From assembly GCA_018985225.1 (NCBI GenBank), contig JADGIF010000499.1, positions 1 through 7,561 of the forward strand: a stretch of 7,561 nucleotides of DNA. Reading direction: 5' to 3'. Under the pieces are notes generated by a model. The model was not told the DNA's origin, ran no database searches, and saw only the letters and a list, made by a program, of their open reading frames with translations. Each line of letters opens with the position of its first letter. Positions within the stretch are counted from its first letter, which is position 1. Positions 1 to 7,033 of the stretch are shown piece by piece. This DNA comes from Amoeboradix gromovi X-113 (Eukaryota > Fungi > Sanchytriomycota). A program made the position numbers and the translations under genes.

Positions 1-5
1 AAGCG

Positions 6-136
6 TGAGCAATCAGTGTAACGGAGCATCTAGCATTGCTAGTTTCTCTGTGGGAATTCTCGATTTTCTCGGAAATCAGGACTTTTAACGAGGAGATCGC
101 AATTAGAAACAGTCAAAATTTTTGTTTTTTTGCTCA
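6..136 (+). repeat. Dispersed element copy 1 (core 6-92; TGAGCAA...TTGCTCA inverted ends)
   Basis: The core aligns without gaps to 4099-4185 at 70/87 identity (manual count). TGAGCAA (6-12) is the reverse complement of TTGCTCA (130-136). Confidence 0.85.
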
Positions 137-671
137 AAATAAATTAAGCTGGTATATTATCACTTTCATTTCAGAAAAACTTTCATTTTCTTTGATGCAT
201 TACCATCGGTTTCATTTTGTCTTGCTTGTATGAGCTACAGCGCATCAACTGACAGACTTTCTCTATCAATCATAAAATTCAATTTTACTAACTTTTGCAG
301 TTATCATTTCTTTTATGACATATACTTGAATGCTTCGATTATCAAAACAGCAACGTCCGCTGCTCTGTTGAAATTTTTTGTAATACTGTATATCAATCTA
401 ACAGCAATACATTTCTGCAAGGAAAGCTATCCAGCATAGCCTGAAAATTGTTTGCAGAGTCGCTCTGCTGCCCGAGGTCGACCACCAATGGCAACACGAC
501 CGGAGTATAAGGCTAAGTGGATAAAAGGTATGCACGTTCAAACCAGTGCGAGAACTAGCGGAGAGCTCATCCCTAAAAAACACTGAATTTGCCTTCGGTC
601 ATATTGGGTCCATTTTTGCAAAGTTTGTACAATTTCTTGGTGCTTGTTGAACTAGGATAAAACAATATCGG

Positions 672-1879
672 ATGGCAAACTCAGATTTGACCGCAACACT
701 CATTAGCGTCCTGTTTATATATAGATTAGATAAATTATTTGATTTTTCGTACTTTTTCTTGAGTAGCCTAGTAATGTATTTGCCTTACACTGTAGAGGAG
801 TATATAGAGAAAATAAAAATAAAACTGCCAAAGAATAAAACGTTGGAATATGATGTAGAAGCATCCTACAAAGATCTTTCGAATGTAGGACTACGTGCAA
901 TGCAAATATTGCCTCGTAGCTATTTACGAAAACATGGCACGCTGGACAAATATTTCTTTTTTGAACAATATCAACAATTGACGTTGTTTAGCATAATGAG
1001 CATGTTCATCATAATGATAATGAGTACAATTGAATACTTTATACCAAGTAACCCCGATTATACAAATATTAGTCTTGGGCTAACCTGGTCAGTTTTTGCC
1101 ATTTTTACTCAATTGATGTTTCTGGGACTAGCGATTGAGTCAAAGTCCCAGTTGCTTCTTATTGGATTAGCAGCAACTCAGGGTTTTTTTGCCGCAAGTT
1201 TGTTTACCATACACTCCAATTTCAGTCAACCATTAATGCAGGTATATTTTGATGTTTCTTCCTATTTTAAGTCCACAAAATGGCTTTCTCAAGTCCTGTT
1301 AGATGAAAAGGTATTTATGCTCGGTTTAACTCTAATATTTAGTATTGTGACAGCCTTGTTAACTGTCCCATTTGTACGCAAATACAAATGTTACTCGATC
1401 GCAAACAAGTCCGAACCCTGGACTGGGGGTTTATTGTACCTCGAAGTAATATCCCCATTGGTAGCAGTTGTATGTTTGCTCTCTTTTGACTCGACTTTTA
1501 TTCATTTTCCTGTTGTTTTAATAGATATCCTGCTGAATGTTTATTTATTTAAAATCCATTGTCAGTCATTCCTTAACATTGCTAAAATCAAATCGGCTGC
1601 CATATTCGCAATAAGCGGGCGCACTAAGATTCAGATTTTTAGAAACACCGTGCTTCTATGCTAATTTAGATCAATTACCTTAACGGTTTCAGCTGCGTTG
1701 TATTTGTGCAATTAATTGGCCCAATCTTACTAAAGATTCAGTCTTTCCTAATGTACTGGTACAAGCCACATGTTATATGGTGGTTTATGTTGAGTTGGAT
1801 AAGTTTAAATCAGATATCTATATTTCTTATGGCTATATTTTTAACCAGCGTCTTAAATACTAGAATACTAGTTGAATAA
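672..1879 (+). CDS. TMEM161: TMEM161-family multi-pass membrane protein, 2 exons (672-1649, 1670-1879), 395 aa
   Basis: Hydrophobic multi-TM ORF with motifs I recognise from TMEM161 proteins: FFEQYQQL (cf. EYQWL) and KIHCQSFLNIAK (cf. HLQAYLNLA). Removing 1650-1669 continues the frame as INYLNGFSCVVFVQLIGPILL (cf. YLCVIALQYVAPL) through a further TM segment to TAA at 1877-1879. The family call is by recognition, not by database search. Confidence 0.8.
1650..1669 (+). other. 20-nt spliceosomal intron (phase 0) in the TMEM161-like gene
   Basis: GTGCTTCTATGCTAATTTAG has GT...AG ends and a CTAAT branch-like motif. It contains the in-frame TAA that ends the unspliced ORF, and its removal restores 69 further codons with family-like sequence. 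Confidence 0.85.
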
Positions 1880-1884
1880 ATAAA
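1875..1884 (+). promoter_or_regulatory. Putative polyadenylation signal overlapping the TMEM161 stop codon
   Basis: AATAAATAAA (two overlapping AATAAA) includes the TAA stop at 1877-1879. Confidence 0.45.
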
Positions 1885-2028
1885 ATACTTGCTGCTGTCA
1901 ATTTATTTGAGGTTTTAATAAAATCTCTGTAGCACCAAGACCAGACACAAATCAAAAGGTAGCCATTGCTGTCACTCATAAGAGTTCCAGCGAAGTTGAT
2001 TGGATTAGCGGTTCGTGTGAAAATTGCA

Positions 2029-2038
2029 TTTATTTATT
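2029..2038 (-). promoter_or_regulatory. Putative polyadenylation signal of the ALDH7 gene
   Basis: Minus-strand AATAAATAAA starts about 10 nt after the stop codon. Confidence 0.45.
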
Positions 2039-2047
2039 CCACTGCAG

Positions 2048-3601
2048 TTATTCAAATGTAATTCCCTGTGCTAGCGGCAGTTTTTTCGAATAATTAATCG
2101 TGCAAGTTGATTGTCGACAGTATAGCTTCCATGAATCACTACCACTCTCTCTTCCCCATCCAGTTTCTTTATTTCCACCAAATGCTCCCCCAATTTCTGC
2201 TCCATTTGTTGGTATGTTAACATTTACAATTCCGCAATCGCTACCGTTAGGCCCAATCCATTTAAACATGTTTGTTATGTCTTCCGTAAATAGACTGCTA
2301 GATAGTCCTTGCTGTACATTGTTGTTAATTTTAATGGCTTCATCTATGTTCTTGATCTTTATTGCATGGACAACCGGAACAAACACTTCATGCTGTAAGA
2401 GATCAGAATCTTTATCTATTTCGCTTATAGTAGGAAAAACAAAATTTCCATTACAACCTTCGTGCTTCTTTGTTGTACTACTTATGACTTTGCCCCCGCA
2501 TCGAATCTTACCCCCTTGCTTTTTAATCGACTGCACCAATGATTCATATTGCAAAACTTGGTTATGAGAATGCAATGGTCCACAGAGAGTACCCGGAACC
2601 AAGGGATCACCAATCTTAATTGTTTTATAAGCAACTGTTAACTTATCTAGAAATTCATCGTATATATTCTCGTGCAATAGTAGCCTACGTGTTGTAGTGC
2701 ACCTCTGCCCACTTGTACCCACACTAGCAAACAATGCACCTCTAACAGCCATATCAATGTTGGCATCTTCTAAAACAATTAAAGCATTATTGCCGCCGAG
2801 CTCCAACAAAGTTTGACCGCACCATTTGGCGCGCTCCTCATTTACGATTTTCCCGATCTTTGTACTTCCTGTAAACGATAACAAAGCAACACGACGATCG
2901 TTTACTAAAATCTTACCAACGTCCACATCGCCTAAAATTAAACTGCTTAGTGCTACAGGCAGAGAATGTCGCTTGAAAACTTGTTGAACTAGGTGATTTG
3001 TAGCAATTGCTGTTAATGGAGTGGTCGGTGAGGGTTTCCAAACTACAGAATTTCCAGTAATCCAAGCTAATGCAGCATTCCATCCAAACACGGCGTTAGG
3101 AAAGTTGAATGCAGTAATACACCCAACAACACCAAGAGGATTAAATACCTCAAGCATAGCATGATTTGGCCTTTCAGAAGGAATAACTTTACCATTCAAC
3201 ATACGGCTTAAACCAACAGCATAATCACATATATCTATGGTTTCTTGGACCTCACCTAGTGCTTCTTCGTATATTTTGCCCATTTCCAGTGAGATTATTA
3301 AAGCCAATTCTCCTTTATTGGCCGCAAAGGCATCACGGATATCCTTTACAATTAATCCACGCTGAGGAGCAGGAATATTTGCAAATTGTTTGTACGCTTT
3401 GTGTGCATTCGTAATTGCTGCCTTCATATCATCCGCTGTATTATGTTTTACAGAAGCCAGTATCTTGTTAGTGCTTGGACTTCTAATGTCAACTGTGCCT
3501 TGCGTTGAAAAGTACTTTTCTTTGATTCCAATCCATTCACCAGGCAATTCAGTTGGCAGCTTAACATGCAACGTTCTTTTGATGTAAAATAGCCTTGACA
3601 T
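2048..3601 (-). CDS. ALDH7A1: Aldehyde dehydrogenase family 7 (antiquitin / alpha-aminoadipic semialdehyde dehydrogenase), 517 aa, intronless
   Basis: ALDH motifs ITAFNFP, WKPSPTTP, SFTGST, LELGGNNA (catalytic Glu) and GTSGQRCTT (catalytic Cys). ALDH7-typical segments SDCGIVNVNIPTNGAEIGGAFGG, GRESGSDSWK and C-terminal LPLAQGI. The basic N-terminus lacking acidic residues (MSRLFYIKRTLHVK) may be a mitochondrial presequence (inference). Confidence 0.95.
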   Translation of the reverse strand: MSRLFYIKRTLHVKLPTELPGEWIGIKEKYFSTQGTVDIRSPSTNKILASVKHNTADDMKAAITNAHKAYKQFANIPAPQRGLIVKDIRDAFAANKGELALIISLEMGKIYEEALGEVQETIDICDYAVGLSRMLNGKVIPSERPNHAMLEVFNPLGVVGCITAFNFPNAVFGWNAALAWITGNSVVWKPSPTTPLTAIATNHLVQQVFKRHSLPVALSSLILGDVDVGKILVNDRRVALLSFTGSTKIGKIVNEERAKWCGQTLLELGGNNALIVLEDANIDMAVRGALFASVGTSGQRCTTTRRLLLHENIYDEFLDKLTVAYKTIKIGDPLVPGTLCGPLHSHNQVLQYESLVQSIKKQGGKIRCGGKVISSTTKKHEGCNGNFVFPTISEIDKDSDLLQHEVFVPVVHAIKIKNIDEAIKINNNVQQGLSSSLFTEDITNMFKWIGPNGSDCGIVNVNIPTNGAEIGGAFGGNKETGWGRESGSDSWKLYCRQSTCTINYSKKLPLAQGITFE

Positions 3602-4098
3602 AAAGTATGAAGGAGAGAATTTATAGCTACCTAATTTACTTGAACAGCTGATTCATCTTGATTACCTGAATCCTGTGGCTCGAATAGTCTTTCATAACTG
3701 TGTAAAATCTTGATATTCTCTCTTTTCTTTTCCAATCCAAATTATCTCAGCAGAATATGGAGGATCTAGAGATCACTGAGAGGAACAGAACAACTTCTTT
3801 TAAAGAAACTATCAGATACCTATATACAGTAGGAAAGAGATTTGTTTAACGCTTACAAGATGCTCAGTAGCAATTTAAAATCTCCACCTCTTCCTCCCAA
3901 CAAGATCATCTTGTTTACTAGGCTTTCATAAAGGAAGAAAAAGAAGGTCATGAAGGACAAACCCATACTTTGTCTAAGGATTTCTTGGGTGCCAGCAAAT
4001 TGAAGGCATTAAAAGTGGAGGAAGACCATATGGCAACAACTAAAATAACATTGAAATACATGAATTTTATTCAGTTGCTTCTCAGTCCAGTGGAAGGT

Positions 4099-4232
4099 TG
4101 AGCAACGATTGTAATAGAGCGACTAGGGTTTTTAGTTTCTCTGCGGAAATTCTTAATTTTCTCCGAAATCAGGACTTTTAATGAGACGCATATTTATTTT
4201 AATATTTAAAAACGATGGAGTCAATATGCTTA
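4099..4232 (+). repeat. Dispersed element copy 2 (core 4099-4185)
   Basis: Shares TGAGCAA, TAGTTTCTCTG and GAAATCAGGACTTTTAA with copy 1. GGTTGAGCA (4096-4104) and TGCTTAACC (4227-4235) form an imperfect inverted pair. Confidence 0.85.
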
Positions 4233-4431
4233 ACCATATCCTGGAATTTACAGCCAATAGTGTGGCCAAAATGAGTAAAGATAACATTTCAATCACGTCG
4301 TTTTAAAAGTTGACGTATCATTAACATAGTGGTCCGACTAGCGGTAGTGACAGTTAGGTGTCTATTATTTGCTTGAAATGTCCCCCAAAATCGTGAACTG
4401 GTCCTCTATGTTCCCATTTAACAGCTTATAT

Positions 4432-4782
4432 TCATTGTCTGATATTCGGGAGTATATTATCGCATATTATATCCATTACATGTATTTGTACGTGTACTAG
4501 ATTTTCCGGACTGGCTAACGCTTGTACTCTTAATTCTTCTGTTAAGTTCAATTGGAACATTGAGTCTTCCAGTATAAATCTATTATGTATTTCTGCCAAT
4601 ATGCTTGCCGATTTGCTATTCATATACTTGTTATATTCTATTAGAAATAGAATGTTTTCCTCACTGAAGCATTCCTTCGAAACCTTTAGTAACAAAGCTG
4701 TAGGATATTCCTTATTTCGTATCTTCAATTTTCCACTATTGCTGTTATTGCTATGAGTAAATAGGTGTAAATCTAATAACAT
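4432..4782 (-). CDS. RGS (regulator of G-protein signalling) domain ORF, 116 aa; possibly the surviving 3' end of a longer or decayed gene
   Basis: RGS hallmarks: ECFSEENILFL (SxENxxF), IHNRFI...FQLNL (I...FI......NI) and QIHVMDII.DNILP. The frame stays open about 19 codons upstream of the ATG (to about 4839), so the true start is uncertain. Confidence 0.7.
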   Translation of the reverse strand: MLLDLHLFTHSNNSNSGKLKIRNKEYPTALLLKVSKECFSEENILFLIEYNKYMNSKSASILAEIHNRFILEDSMFQLNLTEELRVQALASPENLVHVQIHVMDIICDNILPNIRQ

Positions 4783-5631
4783 ATGATATTCTTGACAAGA
4801 AGCTACGAAGATTAAGAAATCAAGCCACCGGAAATTAAGCTATTTTTCAAGTAATGAGTTACTCAGCCTGATACACCAGCCGTGTTGAATGTAGAACAGT
4901 AAGTCCTTTATGGTCTTCTAAGCCTAAGCAACATGGATATATACCATTCCGGCATATTTTCGCCTATTTTAACATCACCAACGTCCTGACGACCACAGTT
5001 TCCACATTTGAACAAGCAACTATTTACATTTTCTTGACCAATGGGTCGCATATAGAATAAGTAATAGTGAAATGTTCTCCATTTATAACAAATTGACTTA
5101 AACTACGATGTTTTCATGAATATGCTAGCCATCGGTTCACCCCATATAAAGTTGACTACAAGTAGCGATAACGTTCTATTGCGTTTCCTTATATGCCAGC
5201 TTGCTTTCTTTTTCCGCCTGTTAATAGACTTTCTTTGACTAGAATTCAGCTGCAACACGATCTTACATCACAGTGGGTGTACTGGCGTATGCGGGGACCC
5301 ATTTAAACGTCAATGCTCTTATGTTTGTCAAAATTCTCACGACTTGATGATGAGTTTTATTTAATAAATTATTTATCGAGAGTGAATTTTTATGTAATAC
5401 TTTTCTTTTCTGGACACTTCGAATAGGATAAAAACGCGATATCATATATACTCGTAATTCATCAATAACAAGTAGTACTAAACCTCGCGATCCTGAACAT
5501 GTCGGATTTAAAGAAATAATAGCAAAGATAGTATACACCCATCGACATTGAGAAAAAAAGTGCCAATAGAGATGATACGCAGCAAAGAATGTACATATTA
5601 AACCCAATTCAACGTCAAGGTAGTGAAAACA

Positions 5632-5758
5632 TGAGCAATCACTGCAATTGGAGAAATTAACTTCTCTGTGGATATTCTCGATTTCTTAGAAACCGCGTTT
5701 TTAATGATGAGTCTGAATTAATCTATTAATATTGTGAAAGCTATCGTTGAAATACTTG
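5632..5758 (+). repeat. Dispersed element copy 3 (core 5632-5711; about 11-nt deletion in hairpin 1)
   Basis: TGAGCAATCA.TG.AA, TTCTCTGTGG..ATTCTCGATTT and TTTTAATGA match copies 1 and 2. A weaker 3' extension (TTAATATT...AATA) resembles copy 2. The right boundary is approximate. Confidence 0.75.
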
Positions 5759-5795: not shown

Positions 5796-5801
5796 TTTAT
5801 T
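5796..5801 (-). promoter_or_regulatory. Putative polyadenylation signal overlapping the Hsp40 stop codon
   Basis: The minus strand reads CAG-TAATAAAT, so AATAAA overlaps the TAA stop. Confidence 0.45.
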
Positions 5802-7033
5802 ACTGTTGCCCACATTGTACGCGTTCACCATGTGTATGATCTTCATCGTCGTCGTTTTTGTTTGCTTCTTGTTCTAAATCTTTTATATCTCTGTCGCTGA
5901 CACTTACGGCATTCACTGGCAATGCTTCCATAACTGCGCTTGATTTAGGCTGGTCTTGCTGCCAAGGTAACAAACTCTTCAAAGATTCGATATTAGCTGG
6001 TGAAAAGAACGACTGGGTTGGGAACACAACATCAAATACTAAGAATAGATTTCCTGGTTGGTGATGTCTCCTGCTAGGCATACCTTCATTCAGTACCATT
6101 TTTGTCGATCCTAAGTTAAAATAAAGTACCTGGTGTGATCTCATTAGCATTTACATTGATACAAAGTGTTCTATTATCTAAGTGTTTTAATAAGATGGAA
6201 CCGCCGCATAAAGCAGTAGACAAAGGCACTTGGCAAGTAACAGTAAGATGGTTACCTTTTCTTTGAAATCTGTCGTGAGGTTGGACATCTAAAATAATAA
6301 CAACATCACCAGGAATAACATCCGGCTCCTGGTCACCCTCGCCAGCAAATCTGATGGTTTCTTCATGTGCCATACCGCGCTCAACATGAACTTCTAAAAT
6401 CTTGCGTTCTTTTGCAGTGCACTTACCATTACAAGCTTTACACAAGAAGGCAGGATCAATCGACTTACCAGCACCGCGACAGGTAGGACATACAGTCTGC
6501 ATTTGCTGGATCATTGGACCGATTTGACGAACAATCATTTTCACACCAGTACCACGGCACTCCGAACAAGTTGATTGCATGCCTTTCTCTTTGGCCCCAC
6601 TCCCTTCACATTGTTGGCAAAGAGTAGTCTTATTTAAAGCAAGCTTTGTGGTTTTGCCTTTGTAAACATCCTCGAGAGTCACTTTAAGAACATGGGCTAC
6701 ATCTTTACCGCGCTGCTGGCGTTGTTGTCTTCCGCCACTTTGGCCACCGAACATTCCACCAAAGAATTGACTGAATATATCACTAGGATCATGGAATCCA
6801 CCCATTCCACCTAGTCCCTGCTCACCATATTGATCATACATTTGTCTTTTCTCTGGATCGCTAAGTACTTCAAAAGCACCACTTATGTCTTTAAATTTGT
6901 CTGCTGCTTCTGGAGAGGAATTCTTATCTGGATGATATTTGAGTGCCAATTTCCTGTAAGCCTTTTTAATCTCATTGTCACCAGCTCCTGGAGATACACC
7001 TAATAAATCGTAAAATTTTGTATCCTTCACCAT
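5800..7033 (-). CDS. YDJ1: Type I Hsp40 co-chaperone (Ydj1/Mas5/DNAJA), 2 exons (7033-6130, 6110-5800), 404 aa, C-terminal CAAX (CGQQ)
   Basis: [13 protein letters not shown] start, J-domain with HPD, G/F-rich linker and four zinc-finger repeats ([32 protein letters not shown]). The spliced junction reads [16 protein letters not shown], and the protein ends in an acidic tail followed by VQCGQQ*. Confidence 0.95.
6111..6129 (-). other. 19-nt spliceosomal intron (phase 1) in the Hsp40 gene
   Basis: The minus strand reads GTACTTTATTTTAACTTAG, with GT...AG ends and a TTAAC branch-like motif. Excision joins the two track ORFs (6116-7033 and 5800-6150) into one full-length Ydj1-like protein. Confidence 0.92.

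Follow-up and report, generated by a model that had tools for sequence, protein, structure and literature searches.

The window analysed here covers 7,561 nucleotides (nt), contig C768:1-7561, of the 10.55-Mb, 1319-contig assembly of the sanchytrid fungus Amoeboradix gromovi X-113. It carries three intergenic copies of a short repeat, all on the forward strand. A first-pass annotation, made from the letters alone, had placed the copies at 6, 4099 and 5632 and described a free-standing unit of ~90-130 bp. The presence and common orientation of the three copies are borne out by a repeat search of the window, in which positions 1-92 pair with 4094-4185 at 79% identity and shorter three-way matches reach 5627-5684. 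They are also borne out by BLASTN, which aligns the first two copies without gaps at 80.46% over 87 nt, that is, the 70/87 previously counted. The core of the third copy, at ~5627-5711, aligns with 8-nt and 2-nt deletions relative to the others, in agreement with the internal deletion already noticed, and the gene content of the window places all three copies between genes. Chance alone does not account for the resemblance among them. We consider, with a probability of roughly 0.88, that these repeats are the right ends of decayed, internally deleted and non-autonomous copies of an IS607-type transposon encoding TnpA and Fanzor2. Four direct observations carry this reading: the core is continuous with Fanzor coding sequence, the elements have definable boundaries, their copy number is high, and the genome holds full-length TnpA+Fanzor siblings.

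The three window copies represent different states of the same element. Copy 1 (1..95, +) consists of the last 95 nt of the right end of a mini-element and covers positions 240-333 of the family profile (nhmmer, 1-94, E 3.6e-31), with 91/94 identities (97%) to the family consensus. Its ancestral Fanzor frame stops at the TAA in 86-88 and its right boundary lies after AACGAG (87-92) and GAG (93-95). The start of the contig has removed everything further upstream. Copy 2 (4012..4188, +) is a right-end-only fragment covering profile positions ~157-331 (nhmmer, 4012-4185, E 1.1e-36; 127/165 identities, 77%, to the consensus). Besides the core it holds a decayed RuvC-III coding stretch, GACCATATGGCAAC, at ~4023-4036, and no match to the left-end profile occurs within 3602-4011. 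Copy 3 (5344..5711, +) is a complete, old mini-element of 368 bp, recognised by the pairing of a left and a right end. The left end and a remnant of the first gene occupy 5344-5554 and the right-end part occupies 5560-5711 (group profiles match at 5345-5554 and 5560-5650, the right-end nhmmer profile at 5566-5707), each ~70% identical to its part of the consensus. Considering these identities of 97%, 77% and ~70%, the members of the window therefore differ in age. All three appear to be relics. The proposal that homology starts at TGAGCAA does not hold: in profile searches, copy 2 extends upstream as far as 4012-4023 and copy 3 as far as 5566, copy 3 matches the left end still further upstream, and copy 1 is truncated by the start of the contig.

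The limits of the element were read from 33 copies aligned with their flanks. Similarity ends sharply at ...TTTTAACGAG, mostly followed by GAG, and carries on for hundreds of bases 5′ of TGAGCAA. Pairing of left and right ends, done within the loci examined, gave 50 distinct complete mini-elements of 321-623 bp, with clusters near 450-490 bp and ~570-620 bp. The supposed free-standing unit is thus the last ~95 nt of these longer elements. Their left end begins CAGCTYGAYTRTTTTCTTGAATAAA, with the constant start CAGCTYGA..., and their right end closes with TTTTAACGAG. The GAG that comes after it is 66-80% conserved and gives way to background composition, and in the boundary logo conservation falls to background past position +3 after AACGAG. 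Flanking duplications, for which a check had been suggested, were not seen: there is no target-site duplication in the 50 complete copies, because the left and right flanks, variable on both sides, are unrelated. Nor do the 50 copies have terminal inverted repeats, since the two ends share just a CTCG/CGAG resemblance. Of 42 copies, 37-42 have an AG before the left end, and 48-56 of 70 have one closing the right end. A is enriched in the three bases 5′ of the left end, at 62%, 60% and 48% as compared with 31.5% in the background. The AG at both junctions, as deduced from occupied sites, is consistent with the matching-dinucleotide insertion of IS607. One subfamily of mini-elements contains an internal tandem duplication of ~110 nt over the zinc-ribbon coding stretch (L015, 1249-1355 and 1362-1604; L019, 1241-1349; L049, 1801-1909).

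Upstream of the core, the aligned longer copies translate as ...ECNESFTSQTCTRCG...C..C...DRDHMAARNIYIK. The same ancestral Fanzor frame runs through the core, which takes in its final ~45 codons, to a TAA located 4-7 nt before the boundary. The family consensus, E-SFTSQT-C-TR-C ... C..C ... RD-HMAAR-N, places a glutamate six residues ahead of the zinc finger; at the canonical upstream RuvC-II position the abundant family reads LPS, as opposed to LPE in the sibling element of contig C542 (see below). The Fanzor signature (Yoon et al., 2023, bioRxiv 10.1101/2023.08.09.552727) comprises a DPG motif within RuvC-I, RD.....N, and a RuvC-II glutamate displaced C-terminally so as to lie six residues ahead of the zinc finger. 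All three parts are found in the abundant family, the first of them through its longer relics: the DPG is lost from the mini-elements themselves and kept in longer relics. Three of the latter (L086, L087 and L089) span Fanzor residues 251-560, including ALDPGV, contiguously with the core, and share 31-48% identity with the intact C542 Fanzor. With PF07282 (Cas12f1-like TNB / OrfB zinc ribbon), 560 candidates were obtained in the genome; 150 of them were scored, every one above the curated cut-off, and the frame of one mini-element (L052) matches this profile with an E of 2.6e-20.

These coding remnants bear on the idea, raised in the first-pass annotation, that the repeat might be a solo long terminal repeat (LTR) or a SINE-like (short interspersed) retroelement. 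A short dispersed repeat with a sharp 3′ end would suit such an origin, and the genome does contain a Ty3/gypsy-type element on contig C217 (L046, G000:C217:1-10000, 19-4314) with a single open 1431-aa gag-protease-reverse transcriptase-RNase H-integrase frame. The contig starts inside this element and its 5′ LTR is unassembled. However, a search of the genome for reverse transcriptase and integrase yielded this one good Ty3/gypsy element, which is not flanked by the repeat. Moreover, the repeat lacks TG...CA termini, target duplications, an A-rich tail and any tRNA-like part (ARAGORN returned 0 tRNA matches, and none of the 4227 Rfam families matched the window at E up to 1), and TnpB/Fanzor coding DNA lies upstream of its core. 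A retroelement origin is thus extremely improbable. The long copies that had been asked about take the form of the longer relics, which enclose part of a Fanzor. A reverse-transcriptase match beside a repeat copy on contig C834 belongs to a telomerase gene (L047, G000:C834, 3342-5765, −; RVT_1 and Telomerase_RBD) and not to a retroelement; the copy there is decayed and sits in the spacer between the telomerase gene and an arrestin-domain gene. A classical miniature inverted-repeat transposable element (MITE) was rejected as well, inverted repeats and target-site duplication being absent; the repeat is MITE-like merely as a short and abundant deletion derivative. Hence the general class proposed at the outset, a non-autonomous mobile element, stands, and the subtypes put forward with it do not.

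The expectation of a high-copy family is amply confirmed. When copy 2 was searched against the genome at the DNA level, 312 candidates came back; 40 of these were scored, with E values from 1e-17 to 1e-22. Genome-wide pattern searches allowing <=3 mismatches, with the reversed patterns as control, found 428 right ends with a 37-nt core pattern (209 forward, 219 reverse) and 392 left ends (185 forward, 207 reverse), against 0 for either reversed control. A merely local duplication is not the case. Elements occur at a density of about one per 20-25 kb without strand bias, and the mini-element family may make up perhaps 2-3% of the 10.5-Mb genome. Three copies share an orientation by chance one time in four, and strands are balanced genome-wide; therefore, the co-orientation of the window copies, which had seemed worthy of attention, is unremarkable. 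Copy 1 and many other copies sit at contig ends, and the repeat explains many of the contig breaks of the assembly. Two loci, L006 (C690:257-361) and L011 (C1141:465-569), carry the same insertion within the same flanking DNA at ~90-95% identity; they may be diverged alleles, products of a segmental duplication or redundant parts of the assembly. An exact search of public metagenome contigs with a 32-nt core gave 0 matches.

A host cis-acting site, such as an origin, a boundary or a recombination site, had also been envisaged. The intergenic position of the three window copies would fit it, whereas transposon ends and dead coding sequence form part of the copies, which diverge by 3-30% as under neutral decay and are distributed over both strands without relation to neighbouring genes. 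This suggestion finds no support and is very unlikely.

The assignment to the IS607 type relies in part on the full-length relatives of the family in the same genome, in which the nuclease is always paired with a Resolvase-domain TnpA. On contig C542 (L059, G000:C542:57-3245; pair at 1417-3169, −), a Resolvase-domain TnpA frame overlaps, on its upstream side, an apparently intact 569-aa protein with PF07282 and PF12323, the whole representing a different family from that of the window. The best solved relative of this protein is 9b0l, the mimivirus TnpB-like L79 (a Fanzor2), with an E of 5e-16. Its first zinc knuckle is C-I-C, not CxxC, and glutamates are present both at the canonical position, within LPEY, and near the zinc finger. 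Judging from its sequence, the C542 Fanzor is a candidate working nuclease. A second pair, near full-length, is found on contig C459 (L083, G000:C459:9016-12375; 1032-2880), with a MerR+Resolvase TnpA of 233 aa followed by a Fanzor that switches frame between ~2613 and 2680; this switch could be a frameshift or a tiny intron. In total, 12 Resolvase matches were found in the genome, a few of them with open frames of ~210-245 aa, and the open TnpA frames include those of C690 and C787. As for the abundant family itself, a 46-aa frame adjoins the left end in some subfamilies and can be aligned, in register, to the N-terminal MerR-type part of the C459 TnpA.

The position of the core is also that of a guide-RNA scaffold. 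In the IS607-type element ISXfa1, the reRNA consists of a 144-nt scaffold overlapping the 3′ end of tnpB and of a 17-nt guide that lies past the boundary (bioRxiv 10.1101/2023.08.09.552727). The core has the same layout: it overlaps the nuclease 3′ end, the stop codon comes 4-7 nt ahead of the boundary, and unique flanking DNA follows. By positional homology, we infer that the core corresponds to a putative omega/reRNA scaffold region as well as to the transposon right end, which in TnpB/Fanzor systems is the site of recognition by the recombinase. The unique DNA past the right ends of the window copies, taken over a length close to that of the ISXfa1 guide, would then be in putative guide position (96..115, 4189..4208 and 5712..5731 for copies 1, 2 and 3, respectively, all +). 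The best-supported local structure of the core is a predicted two-tier hairpin (copy 1, 21..51, +), with an outer GGAGCA/UCUCUG-type stem and an inner CUAGC...GCUAG, which appears in both the minimum free energy and the centroid fold. It shows AU-to-GC and GC-to-AU double changes (helices 3 and 4). The two tiers are kept in copy 2, whereas copy 3 retains the outer stem and has its inner hairpin deleted.

Several results weigh against the reading of the repeats as IS607-type right ends bearing a guide-RNA scaffold. A first set concerns the transposase. No full-length master with the ends of the abundant family was found among the loci examined, which leave aside C690 and C787, and the longest pair of ends spans 623 bp. 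The tail of the C542 Fanzor after RuvC-III does not align with the core, and the C542 element therefore belongs to a different family. The TnpA link of the abundant family rests on the 46-aa remnant, whose similarity is weak (23% identity to the C459 TnpA N-terminus, with an E of 3e-5 against two sequences, and an E of 0.065 against Pfam MerR); at the level of sequence it is suggestive. These points would suit a Fanzor-bearing transposon of another superfamily, which would have captured its nuclease. Documented cases exist in which non-IS607 transposons captured Fanzor2, and these carry inverted repeats and target duplications. Neither feature was seen in the 50 complete copies, the full-length relatives in this genome all pair the nuclease with a Resolvase-domain TnpA, and the short frame at the left end is in register with a MerR-type TnpA N-terminus. 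Because the TnpA link of the family is weak, capture is nevertheless possible at a few percent.

A second set concerns RNA structure. Folding energies of 95-300-nt stretches are not below those of shuffled sequences (z from -0.2 to -1.1), and RNAalifold returned 0 consensus pairs for 71 copies. A covariation test was made with a structure from one copy, comprising four local hairpins in five helices. This structure pairs in 92% of cells and gives 12 double-changed pairs, as compared with 5.7±2.0 in shuffles, but slid controls reach 11-20, so that the count stands weakly above controls. The covariation score, 0.107 as against 0.03-0.06 in controls, is the sole measure standing out. Over the last 330 nt, conservation is flat in young copies (0.88-0.96) and does not single out the core; in old copies it rises slightly toward the 3′ end (0.71-0.76). 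Hence, since the position fits and direct structural support is weak, the scaffold role is inferred from layout.

It may also be imagined that the core, although derived from a transposon, has become an independent or domesticated family of structured RNA genes serving the host as guide or regulatory RNAs. The local hairpins kept by diverged copies, with some double changes, the slight excess of right ends over left ends (428 to 392) and the existence of right-end-only fragments such as copy 2 would agree with this idea. However, the remainder of the element is still joined to the core in 50 of ~70 sampled cases, and conservation of the core does not exceed that of the dead coding sequence next to it; these two facts make an independent RNA gene family decidedly unlikely. 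The absence of any Rfam match, the non-significant fold z-scores and the lack of an intact family nuclease that could load such RNAs argue in the same direction. The structured RNA suspected in the first-pass annotation thus coincides with the position of a guide-RNA scaffold, weakly supported as a structure, and is part of a transposon and not a gene family of its own.

Taking the repeats as IS607-type right ends, the following course of events may be envisaged. The parent element would have encoded a serine-recombinase TnpA, then a Fanzor2/TnpB RNA-guided nuclease. Mini-elements would have spread in trans through TnpA acting at the AG dinucleotide of both junctions. The core would once have encoded the guide-RNA scaffold, the guide being read from the DNA flanking the right end, and would have helped the element to persist through cutting of empty sites. 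The present copies would mostly be dead relics of more than one wave of activity. Such successive waves are suggested by the contrast between young copies, ~5-10% from the consensus, and copies 2 and 3 of the window, 23-30% away. Among the genome candidates scored, no intact nuclease of the abundant family was found; all 25 candidates with the N-terminal 420 residues of Fanzor were scored, and this part is open end to end in C542 alone. No match to the C542 Fanzor came from a scan of viral contigs. Since the assembly breaks at the repeat, an unassembled master copy may exist. That transcripts of some of the ~430 right ends are still made and taken up by a working Fanzor2, either from such a master or from a cross-reacting C542-like sibling, appears improbable without being negligible.

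Two neighbouring reading frames of the window may be mentioned. Downstream of copy 1, a 330-aa open frame with hydrophobic stretches (672-1664, +) has no Pfam match. Downstream of copy 3, a DnaJ/Ydj1-type gene (5800-7033, −) is split by a 19-nt GT...AG segment at 6111-6129, without which two exons, of 904 and 311 nt, form a single frame of 405 codons.

Among known systems, the closest in organisation are the bacterial elements IS607 (Helicobacter pylori) and ISXfa1 (Xylella fastidiosa). In them a serine-recombinase TnpA is followed by TnpB, as it is by a Fanzor in the siblings on C542 and C459. As in the present family, inverted repeats and target duplications are missing, and the guide-RNA scaffold overlaps the nuclease 3′ end and reaches the right end, which the core matches by position. 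IS607-type insertion proceeds via a matching dinucleotide, which would be AG at both junctions here, as opposed to GG. The present family further differs in its eukaryotic host, in a nuclease with the Fanzor signature (DPG and shifted glutamate) and in its hundreds of copies, nearly all of them internally deleted mini-elements. IS607-type elements with Fanzor2 have been described as mimivirus L79/ISvMimi, chlorella virus ISvNY2A_1 and Acanthamoeba ACa-1/2 (Bao and Jurka, 2013, PMC3627910). The siblings on C542 and C459 share their TnpA(Ser)+Fanzor2 architecture, and L79 is, as said above, the best solved relative of the C542 protein. However, these eukaryotic and giant-virus elements were mostly reported as a few full-length copies, whereas derivatives of 320-620 bp dominate in A. 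gromovi.

A further parallel is offered by the PATE-like miniature derivatives of bacterial TnpB elements, which Meers and colleagues are said to have described in 2023. These reportedly keep the element ends and the omega RNA, and would derive from IS200/IS605 elements, with hairpin ends and a Y1 transposase. The likeness lies in the internal deletion, in the retention of both ends and, by position, of the guide-RNA region, and in the lack of a working nuclease or transposase. In contrast, the A. gromovi family probably comes from a serine-recombinase element and resides in a nuclear genome. No paper pairing Amoeboradix or sanchytrids with Fanzor, TnpB or IS607 was retrieved from the literature searched, and the word stems "transpos" and "repeat" are absent from the A. 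gromovi genome paper. Comparison with known families, as the first-pass annotation advised, therefore has a double outcome: Rfam holds no counterpart and the kind of element, an IS607-type Fanzor2 transposon, is known, while the particular family, its host lineage (Sanchytriomycota) and its abundance appear, provisionally, to be unreported.

For annotation purposes, the appropriate treatment of the repeat is to mask it as the end of a transposon, not to call it an RNA gene. Beyond this practical aspect, Fanzor nucleases, the eukaryotic relatives of CRISPR-Cas12, are under development as compact genome editors, while their life in native hosts is poorly known. The IS607/Fanzor2 expansion in A. 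gromovi provides a natural case, with several hundred miniature copies, each of which joins the same putative scaffold region to a different flank, and with an intact TnpA+Fanzor sibling in the same genome. It adds a host lineage absent from the Fanzor surveys searched and offers a large set of insertion sites from which target preference may be read. If right ends were indeed still loaded, an early-diverging fungus would run a natural, many-guide RNA-guided nuclease system, or a nuclease-dead regulator system, fed by mini-transposons.

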